Shown piece after piece: positions 3,893-30,336 of a DNA stretch of 64,000 bases. Made by a program: the position numbers and the translations under genes. The notes under the pieces were generated by a model. It saw nothing but the letters and a program-made list of their open reading frames with translations. It did no database searches and was not told the origin of the DNA. The stretch lies in sequence record MW272540.1; one strand, written 5' to 3'. The number at the start of each line of letters is the position of its first letter. The stretch's first letter is position 1.

Positions 3893-4255
3893 TCAAACCA
3901 TTTCGTAATTTTTTTCGTAAGTTCCGATGTTGATACGAACGTAGTAACCAGAATCGAAATAGTCTGTCATCACATCACTTTTATCGTAGTTCTTGCTGTT
4001 CAGTGCAGCATAGACTTTAGCCATAACTTCGTTTACACGTTCATCCGTGGTGTTCTTCACACGATGCGAGAAGGAATCATAACCGTTTTTAGCAGCATCT
4101 TCACCGAAGATGGAGATGTCGAAATCGGCCTTCGAAATGGTCATGATGATCGTGGAATAGTTCTTGATAGCAAATGAAGCTTTCCAGTTTTTCGGAAGAA
4201 CCTTTTTCACTTCAACAACCAAGGCCGCTTTCAGCTCTTTGTTCATGTAAGCCAT
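3893..4255 (-). CDS. conserved phage early protein (SDxMTDYFD motif)
   Basis: Start moved to MAYMNK (ATG 4255) after AAGGA; directly downstream of a sigma70-like promoter. Confidence 0.7.
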   Translation of the reverse strand: MAYMNKELKAALVVEVKKVLPKNWKASFAIKNYSTIIMTISKADFDISIFGEDAAKNGYDSFSHRVKNTTDERVNEVMAKVYAALNSKNYDKSDVMTDYFDSGYYVRINIGTYEKNYEMV

Positions 4256-23262: not shown

Positions 23263-24831
23263 TTAGTCATCCCAAGGTGCAGAATCTTCATCGATCATCC
23301 CGGCGATATCTTCGTTAAAATCGATTTGGACCTTACTTAGATTGCGTTTGAACAGAACCGGTCCCAGTGGTTTGGTATCGATAATGTCGGCGATTTCTGG
23401 CTCTATTTCAACAGCCACCGAAGTCACATCATCACCCTTACGAACAACGATAGAGTCGGCGCTAATATCCGAGCGTTCTTCTAGATCTTTTCTCTCGTAA
23501 ACAACCGTATATGGTGCAGTATCATCAAGATCTGACCAACGCATTTTACCCTTTTCAACCACCATACAGAATTTGTTATGGGTGTTGATATCACCATATC
23601 GGGACTTCAATTGTTTGAACAATTGCTGACCAAGGGAGATAAGGTCTTCGTCTTCGGAAATCGCCAATACGAAATCGCAACCATGAAGGAGAGCATACGA
23701 ATCTGCAATGTCGGCTTTGTCAATTTCAAGACTACCAGATGACCCACGGTTTGTTTGAGCACCGGACCACGCAACGATTTTCTTTTCAATTGCCAAACCA
23801 CGGACTTCCTCGGAAATCGCTTTGATGAAGGAATATGAATTGTCAGAAAACTTCATCCGAGACGAAGCCATGATACCAAGATAGTCTACCATGATAACAT
23901 CAGGTTTAAAACCCTTTTTCATCTCCAATTCATCCATCAGGTTTCTGATGTGATTTACGTTGGCTCCCGAAGTAGGAAATTGTTTAACAAACAATTTACC
24001 AAGTTTTTTGCCAAGAACCTTTTTATTAAAACGGTTCATGAACTCGGATTTTTGAACCAGACCACTATCCAGATCATCGAGAGAAATATCCATCAGGTTA
24101 GCGTCAATACGTTTACCTACGGTTTCTTCGCTCATCTCAAACGATACATATAGGACGTTAAGTCCGAGCTGCAAATATTCAGTTGCAAGGTGACACAAAC
24201 CGATAGACTTACCAACACCAGTACCGGCAAGAATAACGTTCAACGTACCCAGTTCGACCCCACCTTTCGTAATCCGGTTTAACATATGATTTAGGAAAGG
24301 GATCTTGTTTGTTTTCTTATTATAGGACTCCCAGCGATCTTCTGCTTGTGCCATATAATCATGACCAATGTCAAAAGTAAATCCAACTGACAAGGCAGTT
24401 TTCATAATTTCTGGAATAGCGCCGATATCCTTTATTTTCTTGTCTTGCTCGTCAAGGGGCTTAGAAAAGTTTTCTCTAATTTGAATACATTCGGAAATAG
24501 CGATATCCATAGCTCTTTCCTGACAGAACTTTTCTGTTTCCTCAACCAACCATTTAGGATCTTCCGGAATTTGTTCAATTCTGGAAATCAATACCTTACT
24601 TTGGTCATATTCTACCTGACTAATATTTTGTTTCTTTTCAATCATTACACCCAGCGCATTAACGGAAGGTGCTTTATTATGCTTTTTTGCATATTCATGG
24701 ATCATCTCGAATGCAATTCGATATGGACCCCTAGCAAAGTATTCAGGTTTCAAAAATGGATATACTTTACCAAAAAATTCGCTGTTATAGACCAGATTAT
24801 TAATAATGATCTGGGACATACTGACACTCAT
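23263..24831 (-). CDS. 41: replicative DNA helicase
   Basis: AGTGVGKS, SFEMSE, VDYLGI, GAQTNR and QLKSRYGD; start MSVSM after GAGG. Confidence 0.96.
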   Translation of the reverse strand: MSVSMSQIIINNLVYNSEFFGKVYPFLKPEYFARGPYRIAFEMIHEYAKKHNKAPSVNALGVMIEKKQNISQVEYDQSKVLISRIEQIPEDPKWLVEETEKFCQERAMDIAISECIQIRENFSKPLDEQDKKIKDIGAIPEIMKTALSVGFTFDIGHDYMAQAEDRWESYNKKTNKIPFLNHMLNRITKGGVELGTLNVILAGTGVGKSIGLCHLATEYLQLGLNVLYVSFEMSEETVGKRIDANLMDISLDDLDSGLVQKSEFMNRFNKKVLGKKLGKLFVKQFPTSGANVNHIRNLMDELEMKKGFKPDVIMVDYLGIMASSRMKFSDNSYSFIKAISEEVRGLAIEKKIVAWSGAQTNRGSSGSLEIDKADIADSYALLHGCDFVLAISEDEDLISLGQQLFKQLKSRYGDINTHNKFCMVVEKGKMRWSDLDDTAPYTVVYERKDLEERSDISADSIVVRKGDDVTSVAVEIEPEIADIIDTKPLGPVLFKRNLSKVQIDFNEDIAGMIDEDSAPWDD

Positions 24832-24855
24832 AAAAATCCTCTTATCTAACGAAAA

Positions 24856-24891
24856 CACCCACGTTTCAAATTTTGGTTCGGAACGTGGGTG
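24856..24891 (-). terminator. probable terminator between the Hint-like gene and 41
   Basis: 10-bp stem CACCCACGTT/AACGTGGGTG with a 16-nt loop, followed by TTTTCGTT. Confidence 0.55.
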
Positions 24892-24906: not shown

Positions 24907-25425
24907 TTAACGTATTTTTGCAGGAACATGAAGTATACCGGTGTCGTTCAACACAAAAGGCTTGTCGTCCTTGGTCAAGATGTTCATCCAGAACTTCGCT
25001 TTATACTTTGGAGTTTTCTTAACACGAGTCATACGCCGCGTGATCTGACCGTCTGGCATAGCATAGTGAGACACCATTAACGCCTGTCTTTCACCAACGA
25101 AGTCATAGAAGCTTAGAACCATATGGTTCTCACAGCACAACCACGACTTTCCGTTTTCCATAGTGATTTCCCACACTTCCGGGTTAAACGGCTCGGTAAA
25201 TTCAGTGTCTACCATTCTGGTAATCTCTGCATATTCACCGGTTTTGGTTGATGGCAAAAGAACGGTATAACCATAGATAATTTGCATTACCTGATACATT
25301 GTCCAAGTAGTTGGGCGCATATCACCCCACATTTCAGGACAATAGAACGTTACTAGGGTATCTTCTGGAAACCCGTTAATATCATAACAGTCATTACGAT
25401 CACATTCTCTGGTTACTTCAGTCAT
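24907..25425 (-). CDS. free-standing Hint/intein-fold protein with degenerate splicing residues
   Basis: GFPEDTLVT (block A), VWEITMENGKSWLCCENHMVL (block B), MNILTKDDKPFVLNDTGILH (blocks F/G); start lies 2 nt after the gene 40 stop. Confidence 0.65.
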   Translation of the reverse strand: MTEVTRECDRNDCYDINGFPEDTLVTFYCPEMWGDMRPTTWTMYQVMQIIYGYTVLLPSTKTGEYAEITRMVDTEFTEPFNPEVWEITMENGKSWLCCENHMVLSFYDFVGERQALMVSHYAMPDGQITRRMTRVKKTPKYKAKFWMNILTKDDKPFVLNDTGILHVPAKIR

Positions 25426-25426
25426 T

Positions 25427-25711
25427 TTATTTCCTTTTGAAAATATCAAGGAATCGAATATACCAAGGTTTGGCTTCTTCGAAATTAAATTGAGCAATCA
25501 AGGCACGTTGAACATGTGGAAATAGAATTTCCTTCTCTTCCTCATGTGGTGTAGACCAATCAATATGCATTTTACCGTCATGAAATTGGACATCATGGAC
25601 ATAAGTTAGATAATGATCATCTCCAATACGAATAACCAACTCTTGGGTGACATTGCGCAATGCTTCCTTAATAATGTCTTTGTATTTATTTTCGTTATAC
25701 TCTTCTTCCAT
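25427..25711 (-). CDS. 40: head vertex assembly chaperone
   Basis: IKEALRNVTQELVI, HLTYV-like segment, FPHVQRALIAQ; position between uvsX and 41; late promoter at 25751-25745. Confidence 0.85.
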   Translation of the reverse strand: MEEEYNENKYKDIIKEALRNVTQELVIRIGDDHYLTYVHDVQFHDGKMHIDWSTPHEEEKEILFPHVQRALIAQFNFEEAKPWYIRFLDIFKRK

Positions 25712-25747
25712 AACACATCTCAGAAGAGGTGGTTTCCCACCTCATAT

Positions 25748-26164
25748 TTAGGGGATGATATTAAATTTAGTTCTATTTGTGTATACAACCGGTGCGACAA
25801 TCTCATCAAAGTCGGTTTGGTGCTGAAACCCATCTTGAACTAGAAGATGACTATAACCCCGTCCCCTTAGATCCATTGGGTGTTTCACCACAATAAAACG
25901 AGACATATTTTGCAATTTCATGGATTTTACACAGTCTTGAATAATTTTATTATCGAATACCTCATTTAATTTTTTAATTTGGTATTTGATCTCATCAAAT
26001 ATTCGACCTCGGTTAGGTTCCATTATAATTACAGTCTTAAACTCACCAAAATATGCGTCATAAACTGCTTTGGTTGTTGGGTCATCAAAAAATCCAAAAT
26101 GAGTTAGATAGTATCCGTAGTCGTCACGAAGGTGTATGAACAGCTGTATTTCTTCTTCAGTCAT
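25748..26164 (-). CDS. hypothetical protein inserted between uvsX and 40
   Basis: Start moved to MTEEE (26164). Confidence 0.7.
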   Translation of the reverse strand: MTEEEIQLFIHLRDDYGYYLTHFGFFDDPTTKAVYDAYFGEFKTVIIMEPNRGRIFDEIKYQIKKLNEVFDNKIIQDCVKSMKLQNMSRFIVVKHPMDLRGRGYSHLLVQDGFQHQTDFDEIVAPVVYTNRTKFNIIP

Positions 26165-26207
26165 TTTGTGTTCCAATAGGGGGTTCAAGCCCCCCATTTA
26201 TGGTTAA

Positions 26208-27385: not shown

Positions 27386-28558
27386 TTAGAAGTCGAACAA
27401 GTCTTCAAGAGAAGTAGTTTTTTCTTGAGTCCAACAAACAGCGTCACAAATAGCCTGTAACGGTTTTTGGAAGTGCTTGCAATACATCCCTACGAAATCA
27501 ATATCCTTTTCTGGAATTATCCCAAAATCTTCAGGAATTTTATCACCAGAAGGCCACGCGATTGTTTCGATGTGGAATTTATTAGGAACCTTCAACATCG
27601 CATACTGGATTTTTTCACCAGAACGGATCGGGTCCACATAACTTCCTTTTTCTGTCAGGTCATGGCAAATCTTGTTGTAGTTGATCGCAGCTCTAACGTG
27701 ACCGGGACAACCACTAACAGGAGTAAAGTTTTCATGATTCTTTTCGATGTTATTGGCACTACTTACTTGTGCAATACGTCTATAATCCTGCTTACTGTAC
27801 TCGTCACGGACTTTCTCAACATGGTTGTGTAGGTCGGTCTCGGTCTGTGTCAGGATGATGTCTATGGCGGTTTCAAGCTGTTCTGACGCGAATGGTGGTG
27901 TGCTACTACGTCTAGTTTCGATACCCATGATCTTGAGCTTAGGAACCACATTACCATGTTCGTCAATTTTTCTCTTACCTTCGTTATCCCAAACAGAAAG
28001 AGCATATCGCTTTTTCTTAGTCCAGAATCCACGAGTTGCGATTACTTCTCGGTCCATAAACAGTTTATGATCGAAATAGTTCATATAGTCTTTCAATTCT
28101 CTATATGACGCATCAATATAAGGTTCTACTTTTTCTTTTGCGAAACGATCTAGCAAATCAACCCATTCAATAACTGGAACATCACCGATTTCAACCCCAC
28201 GCTTTTTAGCTAGAAGTTTTACAATCCCATCGGCTCGAACATATTGTGAGTCAGTATCACAATATACAACATAATCGATTCCACTTGTCCCACACAACTT
28301 ATTGAAATACTCATTGGTCTTTCTGGAAATCCATTTAATTGCAAGTTGTCCACCCATGGTAATAGATTCCGCCATTCTGAGGTCATAATATCTACCTACC
28401 GGGTGACCCAAAGAACCATAAAGTGAGTTAATCAATACCTTTTTTGCTTGTTGGGTGACGTTACACACCTTTTCGTATTTTCTACAATCTGAAATGAGCT
28501 GCTTTAGCTCATCATCAGACATATTATGAAGTTGTTCATCAGTATAATCTAGATTCAT
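27386..28558 (-). CDS. 43B: DNA polymerase, C-terminal subunit (gp43B)
   Basis: KVLINSLYG (motif B), YCDTDS (motif C), KKRYAL, GIETRRSSTP. Confidence 0.95.
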   Translation of the reverse strand: MNLDYTDEQLHNMSDDELKQLISDCRKYEKVCNVTQQAKKVLINSLYGSLGHPVGRYYDLRMAESITMGGQLAIKWISRKTNEYFNKLCGTSGIDYVVYCDTDSQYVRADGIVKLLAKKRGVEIGDVPVIEWVDLLDRFAKEKVEPYIDASYRELKDYMNYFDHKLFMDREVIATRGFWTKKKRYALSVWDNEGKRKIDEHGNVVPKLKIMGIETRRSSTPPFASEQLETAIDIILTQTETDLHNHVEKVRDEYSKQDYRRIAQVSSANNIEKNHENFTPVSGCPGHVRAAINYNKICHDLTEKGSYVDPIRSGEKIQYAMLKVPNKFHIETIAWPSGDKIPEDFGIIPEKDIDFVGMYCKHFQKPLQAICDAVCWTQEKTTSLEDLFDF

Positions 28559-28827
28559 CGACGCGCACTCACTTCTATATCGTTAATAATAAAATCCATA
28601 CTATTACAATCCATATCATAATAAGGATTTGAACCATTCTCGATAATGGTATTTTTTCTGTGATTTAGAAAATCTTTCATCCGTTGGATTGTTGCTTGGC
28701 TAACAGGCTGAAATAAAAACATCGCTTTGAATTCTTCTAAATCATATTTTTTATCCGTGTCGTTCTGCAAGGATACGTGCGGCTCGTGTAGCAAGTGCAT
28801 CAGCTTTAAACTCCTCTTTTTTGGCAT
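28555..28827 (-). CDS. small ORF in the 43A/43B intercistronic region; start uncertain (ATG 28722 would give 55 aa)
   Basis: Open frame ending in an ATGA overlap with the 43B start; its 5' part overlaps the end of 43A. Confidence 0.4.
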   Translation of the reverse strand: MPKKRSLKLMHLLHEPHVSLQNDTDKKYDLEEFKAMFLFQPVSQATIQRMKDFLNHRKNTIIENGSNPYYDMDCNSMDFIINDIEVSARR

Positions 28828-30268
28828 CTTTACGTTGCAAGAATACTTTTTCTACTTCAATCGGAAGAAAACCGCGCTTCGCGTTGTCGTATCGAACACC
28901 GTTTGCTGCAACAGAATATTTTCCTTCGTGTGGTACTTCATATTGTTTGGTAACTAAACCCATACCCTCAATATCTGGAACCATACGGTCTTTAACTAGA
29001 ATTTTTGGGAAATCTAATTGGTCAACCAAAGTCTCAGGAGAAATATTCTCAGACATGATGATGTGTGGATACAGAGAAGTTAAGTCAAAAGACAACAACC
29101 ACTCATACAAGCCGGGTTTTGGTTCTTTAACAAACGCACCCGCAAACTTAGACCGTTGGGCATGTTTGTTTTCTGGAATAATTACGTGTTCTGCCAACAG
29201 GCTATTATAAATAATAGCGTCCCATGTTTTTAGTGGGCTGAATACGTCAGGTGCGTTTATTCCCGCATAATACGAAACTGATGCAATCAGGAAGATCAAA
29301 CTTAGCCGTTCTTCCAACTTCTTGATAATTTCAACGTCTCGGATCGCATAGTCAATATAAGTTTGTGGGTCTTTCGTGGCAAACATCAAATATGTTTTAT
29401 ATGGCATTTCCACTTTATTAATACCCAGCTCACATTCCGCGATTGTATCCAACTTATAGTTTGGTCTGGTTGTGAATGTAAATTTCTTATATGCAGCCAT
29501 GAAATCAACACAGTTAACACCCTGAATGACATAAGTAACCACATCATCATCGTTGTCGTCTTTTGATATAACCTGTGTGGTCTCTCCAAACGGTGAAAGT
29601 TTATGGATAAATCTCTCACCAAGCACCTTTTTAATACGACCAATCACATAAGGAATATCAAAGAATTCACTATTCCAACCGCTTAGATAATGCGGTGTGT
29701 TGGTAACAAAAAATTGCAAGAACTTAACCAAAACGTCTTTTTCGGATTCACACTTGATATATTCAACGTCATGTAGAACTTTACCATCAATGATTGATTT
29801 TTCTACATCCCATTCGCGAGTTGTCCAGATATAGTATTTCTTTTTCTTTGTACTATAGATCTGAATTGTATCAATTTCATATTCATGTTCTATTGCATGT
29901 GGGAAAGGTCCATCGGTTGGGACCTCGATATCCAAAAACATGATATCAAGCATAGTGTAATCATAAACAGAATTAGCCCCATAAGTATCAGAAATATACT
30001 GGAATGTATAATTGTCCATTCCCAATACTTCTTTACCCATAGACTGCATCTCTTTAAACCATTTTCTAGCTTCTCCAATAGAATCTAGTGATTTGGGAAG
30101 ACACCGACGACCATAGATGTCTCGATATGGAGTTTCAATGTGATCACCAACGTGGCGATATAGGGTTGGAGCGAACCTAACTTTACGAATCTGGTCTTGT
30201 CCAGCATCGTTAAAATATCGGTCATAGATGGTGTTTCCATCCATCCAAACGCTTGTATAAAAATTCAT
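28751..30268 (-). CDS. 43A: DNA polymerase, N-terminal subunit (gp43A)
   Basis: Exonuclease motifs LDIEV, GWNSEFFD and YAIRD; polymerase motif A SFDLTSLYP; start MNFYT after AGGAG. Confidence 0.95.
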   Translation of the reverse strand: MNFYTSVWMDGNTIYDRYFNDAGQDQIRKVRFAPTLYRHVGDHIETPYRDIYGRRCLPKSLDSIGEARKWFKEMQSMGKEVLGMDNYTFQYISDTYGANSVYDYTMLDIMFLDIEVPTDGPFPHAIEHEYEIDTIQIYSTKKKKYYIWTTREWDVEKSIIDGKVLHDVEYIKCESEKDVLVKFLQFFVTNTPHYLSGWNSEFFDIPYVIGRIKKVLGERFIHKLSPFGETTQVISKDDNDDDVVTYVIQGVNCVDFMAAYKKFTFTTRPNYKLDTIAECELGINKVEMPYKTYLMFATKDPQTYIDYAIRDVEIIKKLEERLSLIFLIASVSYYAGINAPDVFSPLKTWDAIIYNSLLAEHVIIPENKHAQRSKFAGAFVKEPKPGLYEWLLSFDLTSLYPHIIMSENISPETLVDQLDFPKILVKDRMVPDIEGMGLVTKQYEVPHEGKYSVAANGVRYDNAKRGFLPIEVEKVFLQRKDAKKEEFKADALATRAARILAERHG

Positions 30269-30286
30269 CTTATCTCCTGATAAAAA

Positions 30287-30309
30287 TTGAGGATCCGATG
30301 GATCCTCAA
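30287..30309 (-). promoter_or_regulatory. hairpin just 5' of the 43A SD (candidate gp43 translational operator or terminator)
   Basis: TTGAGGATCC-ATC-GGATCCTCAA, then TTTTTATC-AGGAG-ATAAG-ATG. Confidence 0.65.
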
Positions 30310-30336
30310 AAAATGATAACACGTCTAACCAATCTA

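Follow-up and report, generated by a model that had tools for sequence, protein, structure and literature searches.

The window, a stretch of 64,000 nucleotides from sequence record MW272540.1 that was analysed at its full length, is in the region considered here 100% identical to the Aeromonas phages Aswh_1 and ZPAH1 (Straboviridae, Emmerichvirinae, Ishigurovirus). The genes here run in the order 43A / small ORF / 43B, uvsX, an ORF of 138-149 aa, 40, ASwh1_154, 41, an ORF of 149 aa, and 61. We scrutinized ASwh1_154, which is annotated as a hypothetical protein and is predicted to adopt the HINT fold. The features at and around this gene are as follows.

23263-24831, minus strand: gene 41, DnaB-type replicative helicase, with its annotated ATG at 24831
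24852-24891, minus strand: terminator-like hairpin (24856-24891) with UUUU (24852-24855) in the interval between the HINT ORF and gene 41, recognized by fold energy
24907-25425, minus strand, stop codon included: predicted HINT-fold ORF of 172 aa, ASwh1_154, phrog_16672, from the ORF call and the annotation
25427-25711, minus strand: gene 40, head vertex assembly chaperone of 94 aa, from PF11113 (E 2e-17), phrog_999 and alignment with T4 gp40
25431-25436, minus strand: Shine-Dalgarno-like AAGGAA within the 3' end of gene 40, upstream of the ASwh1_154 ATG, read off the sequence
25726-25743, minus strand: small hairpin GAGGTGG-GAAA-CCACCTC upstream of gene 40, just after CTAAATA, from sequence

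The preliminary description of this DNA had placed a 172-aa ORF at 24907-25425, starting 2 nt after the stop codon of gene 40. The ORF, on the minus strand, and its neighbour were confirmed. The ATG (25425-25423) and the TAA (24909-24907) are in place, the upstream neighbour is identified as gene 40 by its PF11113 and phrog_999 matches, and exactly 1 nt lies between the gene 40 stop codon (TAA, 25429-25427) and the ATG of ASwh1_154. A 196-aa version of the ORF starting at a TTG, as proposed by an ORF finder, was rejected; it overlaps gene 40, and the homologues give it no support. Alignment with T4 gp40 showed that the C-terminus of gp40 is complete. The N-terminus of gp41 is complete as well and aligns in relatives from its first residues, which rules out the start of gene 41 as an extein remnant. 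A GTG at 24858 falls within the terminator-like hairpin upstream of gene 41.

Several other features of the neighbourhood were recorded. The DNA polymerase gene 43 (27386-30322, minus strand) is in two parts, 43A at 28751-30322 and 43B at 27386-28558, with a 90-aa ORF (28555-28827) between them. The annotation of phage 65 names the same split 'split polB', and no intein-like sequence was seen at the ends of the 43A and 43B halves. The 138-149-aa ORF in the interval between uvsX and gene 40 (25748-26197, minus strand) corresponds to phrog_20104, with no function assigned there; it is kept in the Aeromonas relatives and missing in one divergent metagenomic lineage (L007), where gene 40 comes directly after uvsX. 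A palindrome, GGGGGCTTGAACCCCC, is located at 26179-26194, just past uvsX. No Rfam family reached its gathering score anywhere in the 64-kb window, and an intein profile run over 434 ORFs revealed neither paralogues of ASwh1_154 nor true inteins elsewhere in the window.

ASwh1_154 gave a full-length profile match to phrog_16672, a PHROGs family without assigned function, with an E of 1.3e-72, the alignment running from residue 4 to 171 of the protein and from position 2 to 168 of the profile (171 positions). By tblastn against about 50,700 phage records, the gene was found in 21, all of them Aeromonas phages of the genera Ishigurovirus and Ceceduovirus. Large protein searches (a word-indexed search of 5.8 billion proteins with both single sequence and profile, and a full HMMER search of 1.84 billion cluster representatives) returned only about seven clusters, which constitute the family itself, with identity down to 23%. 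A search of IMG/VR with the family member P0006 found no relative, and our literature search found no paper that describes ASwh1_154 or the phrog_16672 family.

The order of gene 40, HINT gene and gene 41 is also present in phage 65, avDM6, CC2, and two divergent metagenomic lineages (L006 and L007). Inspection of relatives demonstrated that the whole slot, with the hairpin between the ORF and gene 41, is the same in all six loci examined; AsSzw2 was left out, its record being full of N here and the apparent match length inflated. In T4, as had been stated before, no gene lies between 40 and 41, which are adjacent with only 9 nt between them. In Angelvirus AsFcp_4, gene 41 directly follows the gp40 match and the HINT gene is absent. 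The gp40 match in AsFcp_4 (L051, 3001-3225) is mostly in unannotated sequence and shares about 30 nt with the end of the annotated CDS before it. Since the gene is kept in this slot in the six loci and absent in T4 and AsFcp_4, it represents a lineage-specific insertion at a conserved core-gene junction. The distance from the gene 40 stop codon to the start of the HINT ORF is 1, 3, 3, 1, 3, and 5 nt in the six loci, so that the relation of the two frames is not kept. A conserved fusion of gp40 to the HINT domain by readthrough or frameshifting, in a Hedgehog-like layout, is thereby ruled out.

We examined the signals flanking the ORF. The hairpin at 24856-24891 has arms of 10 bp and a folding energy of −19.7 kcal/mol (z −4.2), and none of 200 shuffled sequences was as stable; the hairpin and U-tract described earlier in front of gene 41 are thus real features of this interval. 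All six related loci have a strong hairpin at this position, with differing sequences. The late promoter that had been assigned to 25751-25745, however, did not hold up. The site reads CTAAATA instead of TATAAATA and overlaps the ORF before it at its stop codon. L006 and L007, in which another gene directly precedes gene 40, do not have it. No canonical TATAAATA motif was found in the HINT-gene region, and a scan for sigma-70-type promoters gave sites no more numerous than in shuffled sequence. In T4 the uvsX-40 unit is transcribed early/middle. With the late promoter rejected and a hairpin and U-run following the ORF, the HINT ORF is the last cistron of a uvsX-(x)-40 unit, insulated from gene 41 by a terminator-like structure. 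The late timing proposed in the preliminary description loses its support with its promoter, and expression of the HINT protein would follow the uvsX-40 unit rather than late transcription.

Two further signals were noticed. In CC2, a perfect TATAAATA (L005, about 4012-4019), located just before the hairpin and gene 41, overlaps the HINT ORF at its stop codon; the window, phage 65, L006, and L007 lack this site. At the place of the small GAGGTGG hairpin upstream of gene 40, phage 65, avDM6, and CC2 have an inverted-repeat-looking sequence, as judged from the alignment.

The fold of the protein was predicted with AlphaFold2. The model of ASwh1_154 (mean pLDDT 82, pTM 0.78) is disordered in residues 1-12 (pLDDT below 50) and all-beta with short helices in the remainder; its first strands comprise residues 19-20 and 24-28, and its last strand ends at His166. 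When the model was compared with the PDB by Foldseek, the best 50 matches were all HINT domains, 33 of them at E ≤ 1e-3. The VidaL intein was the best match (E 5e-6, TMt 0.75), and gp41-1 gave TMt values of 0.68-0.72. The other matches included a hyperthermophile intein, NrdJ-1, BIL2 of the Tetrahymena BUBL locus, RadA, NpuDnaE, SspDnaB, Mtu RecA, Aes123 PolB1, and Hedgehog. For P0007, the most divergent member (23% identical), the model had a pLDDT of 91.5 and a pTM of 0.86, with the last strand ending at His157. Its best 50 PDB matches were again HINT domains only, with NpuDnaE at a TMt of 0.78. A HINT fold is thus predicted on both models, with E-values as low as 2e-6 and TM reaching 0.78, the two being not fully independent since they were built on one shared alignment of 7 sequences. 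This structural comparison supports the Hint fold that had been suggested from the sequence.

In BFVD, a library of viral structures, the CC2 orthologue came first. Next were mostly large phage proteins (terminases, DnaB helicases, polymerases, and ribonucleotide reductase), along with a few stand-alone 'Hint module' proteins of about 144-172 aa from other phages. Terminases, DnaB helicases, polymerases, and ribonucleotide reductase are kinds of phage protein that often host inteins.

Three segments of the protein resemble conserved intein blocks, and are located as follows.

25348-25374, minus strand: block-A-like first strand GFPEDTLVT, residues 18-26, from alignment and model strand boundaries
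25114-25152, minus strand: block-B-like segment GKSWLCCENHMVL, residues 92-104, from HMMER and hhalign comparison with the gp41-1 intein
24925-24993, minus strand: block F/G-like C-terminal strands, residues 145-167, from a column listing, with a sequence alignment of low confidence

The motifs quoted in the preliminary description are all present, with GFPEDTLVT at residues 18-26, CCENH at 97-101, and FVLNDTGILHV at 157-167. As for the intein-like blocks read from them, block B is supported by sequence, blocks A and G are not supported by sequence statistics, and the block assignment as a whole is supported through the fold prediction. A search of all PDB sequences with the family profile returned the gp41-1 intein first, with an E of only 0.14 and a match over block B. 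Pairwise comparison of the family with natural gp41-1 by hhalign gave a probability of 88% and an E of 2.8e-6 over 24 columns up to the block B His, a value that overstates the significance because gp41-1 was picked as the target after the PDB search had flagged it. With a set combining gp41-1 and the Aes509 PolB split intein, the hhalign probability was 84% over 51 columns. A small intein profile searched against the 434 window ORFs of at least 50 aa ranked ASwh1_154 first, with an E of 0.064.

Outside block B, hhalign gave no significant similarity of blocks A and F/G to gp41-1 or to the Aes509 PolB intein. Searching the PDB with the N-terminal block alone yielded chance matches only, to CD55 and family-11 xylanases, and the C-terminal block alone gave no match. 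Pfam and NCBIfam scans of the seven members returned nothing significant, and ASwh1_154 itself had no match. The best Pfam score in the family was that of P0002 on Intein_splicing (PF14890), with an E of 0.041 and 14 bits against a cut-off of 35.8 bits, in the block B region. As a calibration, Bethlehem gp52, a bona fide mycobacteriophage intein that is large and carries an endonuclease, scored an E of only 0.009 on PF14890.

In IMG/VR, 38 contigs (L013 and L014-L050) encode a peptide identical to block B of the gp41-1 split intein. On L013 (7582-10719), gp41 is fractured into an N-part with IntN and an IntC with the C-part, and two ORFs of 221 and 187 aa lie in between, in agreement with the 'fractured gene' layout (PMC2677866).

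Whether the residues for splicing are retained was judged from the defining intein features given in PMC3196547. Gly18, His166, and Asn148 probably occupy intein positions A:1, G:6, and F:4; the mapping of A:1 was taken from fold boundaries, and that of the F and G positions is of low confidence. At the putative position 1, Gly18 (25374-25372) is invariant in all seven members, in place of the Cys, Ser, or Thr of class 1 inteins, and the residue before it varies (N/A/T/T/N/C/E). His101 (25125-25123) is also invariant and aligns with the block B His of gp41-1 in both HMMER and hhalign, as is expected of position B:10. The Thr of the block B TxxH motif is replaced by C/A/P/S in the family, and the F:4-aligned position is Asn or His, not Asp or Cys. 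In the block F/G-like region, His166 (24930-24928) and Thr151 are invariant. His166 is followed by V/Y/F/F/G/G/A and then by P/A/S/S/S/S/S; Asn, Gln, or Asp next to it was found in none of the seven members (Val-Pro in the window protein), and the C-terminal Asn with a following nucleophile is absent. The class 3 signature (Trp B:12, Cys F:4, Thr G:5) is likewise absent, the aligned residues being V/T/I, N/H, and L/M/V. No Cys is conserved in the family, and P0007 is without any Cys.

Gly at position 1, the absence of a terminal Asn, and Asn or His at F:4 would make splicing impossible by any of the three described mechanisms, and we infer that the protein can neither splice nor cleave itself. 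A one-residue shift in the terminal alignments leaves these conclusions unchanged. The splicing nucleophiles are thus gone, as had been claimed, with Gly at position 1 and no terminal Asn in any member. A BIL-type domain, the other identity that had been suggested, is not supported, for want of Cys1; position 1 is Gly, and the phage protein stands alone. After the last strand, His-x-Ser is present in five members of the seven and His-Val-Pro in the window protein (24922-24930, minus strand, residues 166-168). The H-x-S sequence recalls the HN/S junction of gp41-1, and may be a fossil of the C-extein +1 Ser.

The protein also has nothing to splice, in view of its short tails and the intact gp40 C-terminus and gp41 N-terminus. 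The N-terminal tail is 17 aa long, poorly conserved and disordered, and the C-terminal tail is 5-10 aa. The ORF has its own ATG and Shine-Dalgarno sequence between a complete gp40 and a complete gp41, and is no in-frame insertion within a host protein. The absence of both an endonuclease domain and exteins, noted earlier from the letters, is therefore confirmed, with 17 aa before the fold and 5-6 aa after it.

In spite of the lost chemistry, purifying selection on the gene is strong, with a dN/dS of 0.049 for the HINT gene when phage 65 is compared with avDM6, along with 0.055 for gp40 and 0.016 for gp41. The frame is intact in every lineage, and members are 163-175 aa long down to 23% identity. 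Besides the start Met1, seven columns of the family are invariant, namely Gly18, Glu75, Pro82, His101, Gly126, Thr151, and His166. Identity between the window phage and phage 65 is 37% for the HINT protein, 51% for gp40, and 83% for gp41; the HINT protein changes faster than its two neighbours.

ASwh1_154 is very probably a stand-alone, splicing-incompetent protein with a predicted HINT fold that is held by selection. For the fuller reading that we prefer, we estimate a probability of roughly 0.6: the protein would be a stand-alone HINT domain of mini-intein size, derived from a phage mini-intein. After the loss of host protein and splicing chemistry, it would have stayed on as a plain phage protein, passed on by vertical inheritance in Emmerichvirinae-type Aeromonas phages. 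This agrees with the domesticated intein relic of the preliminary description, which is supported by the predicted HINT fold, the free-standing ORF, the absence of a splice-junction nucleophile, and the purifying selection. The protein would now act as a non-enzymatic protein-binding module. Its binding site may be the vestigial splice-junction cleft, since the former position 1, both His, and the block F Thr are all invariant; Gly18, His101, Thr151, and His166 were assigned to the old active-site motifs by sequence.

No intermediate form, either a homologue embedded in a host gene or one with nucleophiles, was found. In Aes509 (L053, JN377902.1, 1763-6413), the C-terminal half of PolB is split by a Ser1 split intein, a gene for a VSR-type endonuclease lies between the PolB halves, and a gene for an HNH homing endonuclease lies directly downstream of gene 40, in the slot of the HINT ORF here. 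PolB split inteins in Aeromonas T4-like phages, together with a homing endonuclease after gene 40, make mobile-element traffic at this junction plausible.

As to what the protein binds, gp40 is our preferred candidate, and tentatively so. The HINT protein would be made in step with gp40 and might act with it in prohead/portal-vertex initiation. The preference comes from the translational coupling to gene 40 in every locus, where 1-5 nt separate the two; as genes in T4-like genomes are often closely spaced, the coupling carries little weight. Our second choice, the gp41 helicase or the replisome, is only about half as probable. It leads to an alternative account, of equally low probability, in which the protein is an accessory of gp41 or the replisome, not of gp40, and descends from an intein once within a gp41 gene copy. 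The gene is located directly upstream of gene 41, in sequence its product is related only to the gp41-1 intein of cyanophage-like gp41 genes, and a basic loop, K-Y-K-A-K at residues 140-144, is conserved. However, the similarity to gp41-1 spans only 24 columns, and the ORF tails show no similarity to the gp41-1 insertion site, next to an intact gp41 N-terminus. Furthermore, the terminator-like hairpin insulates gene 41 in all six loci, and the protein is acidic overall, with a pI of 5.2-6.2.

That the protein is still an enzyme is less probable than that. Like a BIL/BUBL domain, it would then use its His pair in a non-canonical autoprocessing, or to cleave or ligate a partner with a nucleophile of its own. 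A purely structural scaffold does not require an invariant catalytic His pair, which may be a sign of residual chemistry; His101 (B:10), His166 (G:6), and the position-1 Gly are all invariant even though average identity falls to 23%, and the best structural matches include BIL2 of the Tetrahymena BUBL locus. The residues that such chemistry would draw on speak against it. There is no conserved Cys, Ser, or Thr at position 1 or F:4, the Ser at position +1 is replaced by Pro in the window protein and is found in only 5/7 members, and a terminal Asn, Gln, or Asp is found in none, P0007 moreover having no Cys at all. Residual non-canonical chemistry in the HINT protein is therefore unlikely, and we give slightly less credence still to a cleft of Gly1, His(B:10), and His(G:6) that works as an active site on a partner bearing the nucleophile or the scissile bond, such as gp40, the portal, or gp41. 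If true, this would be the first trans-acting, extein-less HINT enzyme in phage, an intein-descended factor for protein cleavage or ligation.

A decaying intein pseudogene, that is, a functionless selfish remnant like the Arthrobacter Arth_1007 intein, is highly improbable. The loss of the catalytic nucleophiles fits such a remnant, as does a site downstream of gene 40 where mobile elements land (the HNH homing endonuclease of Aes509), and Arth_1007 offers a precedent (PMC3196547). Neutral decay is nevertheless contradicted by the selection data, with a dN/dS on par with that of gp40 and an intact frame of 163-175 aa in every lineage, and the seven invariant columns include both active-site His, whereas Arth_1007 lost its block B His. 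Equally improbable is the absence of any HINT domain, the likeness being an artefact of structure prediction from a shallow alignment: this alignment has only 7 sequences, no Pfam or NCBIfam match reached threshold, and short-piece searches hit CD55 and xylanases by chance, but two confident models matched HINT domains only in their best 50 PDB matches (TM up to 0.78), block B agrees independently by sequence, and the bona fide Bethlehem gp52 intein itself reached only E 0.009 on the same Pfam model.

Inteins are generally regarded as nothing but selfish insertions. To our knowledge, few are well documented as having been kept for a new job, the classic case being yeast HO/WHO, in which the endonuclease part was kept. 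What the present locus holds is a bare splicing domain without nucleophiles, held by selection in a fixed slot of the T4-like uvsX-40-41 core. Its role, if found, would show reuse of the HINT fold after the loss of splicing, and would add a component to prohead initiation (through gp40) or to the helicase module. The biological reach is modest, since the family is tiny and confined to one phage subfamily.

Among known systems, the phage mini- and split inteins gp41-1, VidaL, NrdJ-1, and Aes123 PolB1, which come from T4-like phage replication genes, have the same predicted HINT fold as ASwh1_154 and a similar size, with a core of about 150 aa. They have in common with it a block B segment with its His and an invariant His ending the last strand. 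In contrast to these inteins, ASwh1_154 has no host protein and has its own start codon and Shine-Dalgarno sequence, with Gly for Cys/Ser at position 1, no terminal Asn, and Asn or His at F:4. BIL and Hedgehog autoprocessing domains likewise have the HINT fold in common with ASwh1_154 and use it for something other than canonical splicing, but they keep the Cys1 nucleophile and are fused to the protein that is processed, whereas ASwh1_154 has neither nucleophile nor cargo. ASwh1_154 thus lacks the defining features of intein classes 1-3 and of BIL domains, and belongs to the HINT superfamily at the level of the fold only. The stand-alone 'Hint module' ORFs in BFVD (A0A8S5P792, A0A2Z3EFP0, and A0A8S5VRF6) are also small single-HINT phage proteins; they have no detectable sequence relationship to ASwh1_154, and the whole-database searches return its own family only.

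Two other cases concern inteins that no longer splice. The Arth_1007 intein of Arthrobacter sp. FB24 is of phage origin, has 66 aa of exteins in total, and cannot splice (PMC3196547). It is a single pseudogene that lost the block B His with its endonuclease motifs still there, unlike ASwh1_154, which represents a conserved family under purifying selection with both His kept. The yeast HO/WHO endonucleases are intein-derived stand-alone genes with no exteins and no splicing, selected for a new role (PMC7282813). They kept the LAGLIDADG endonuclease, gained a zinc finger, and lack motif G, whereas ASwh1_154 is the bare splicing domain, with no endonuclease and with the motif-G-like His kept.
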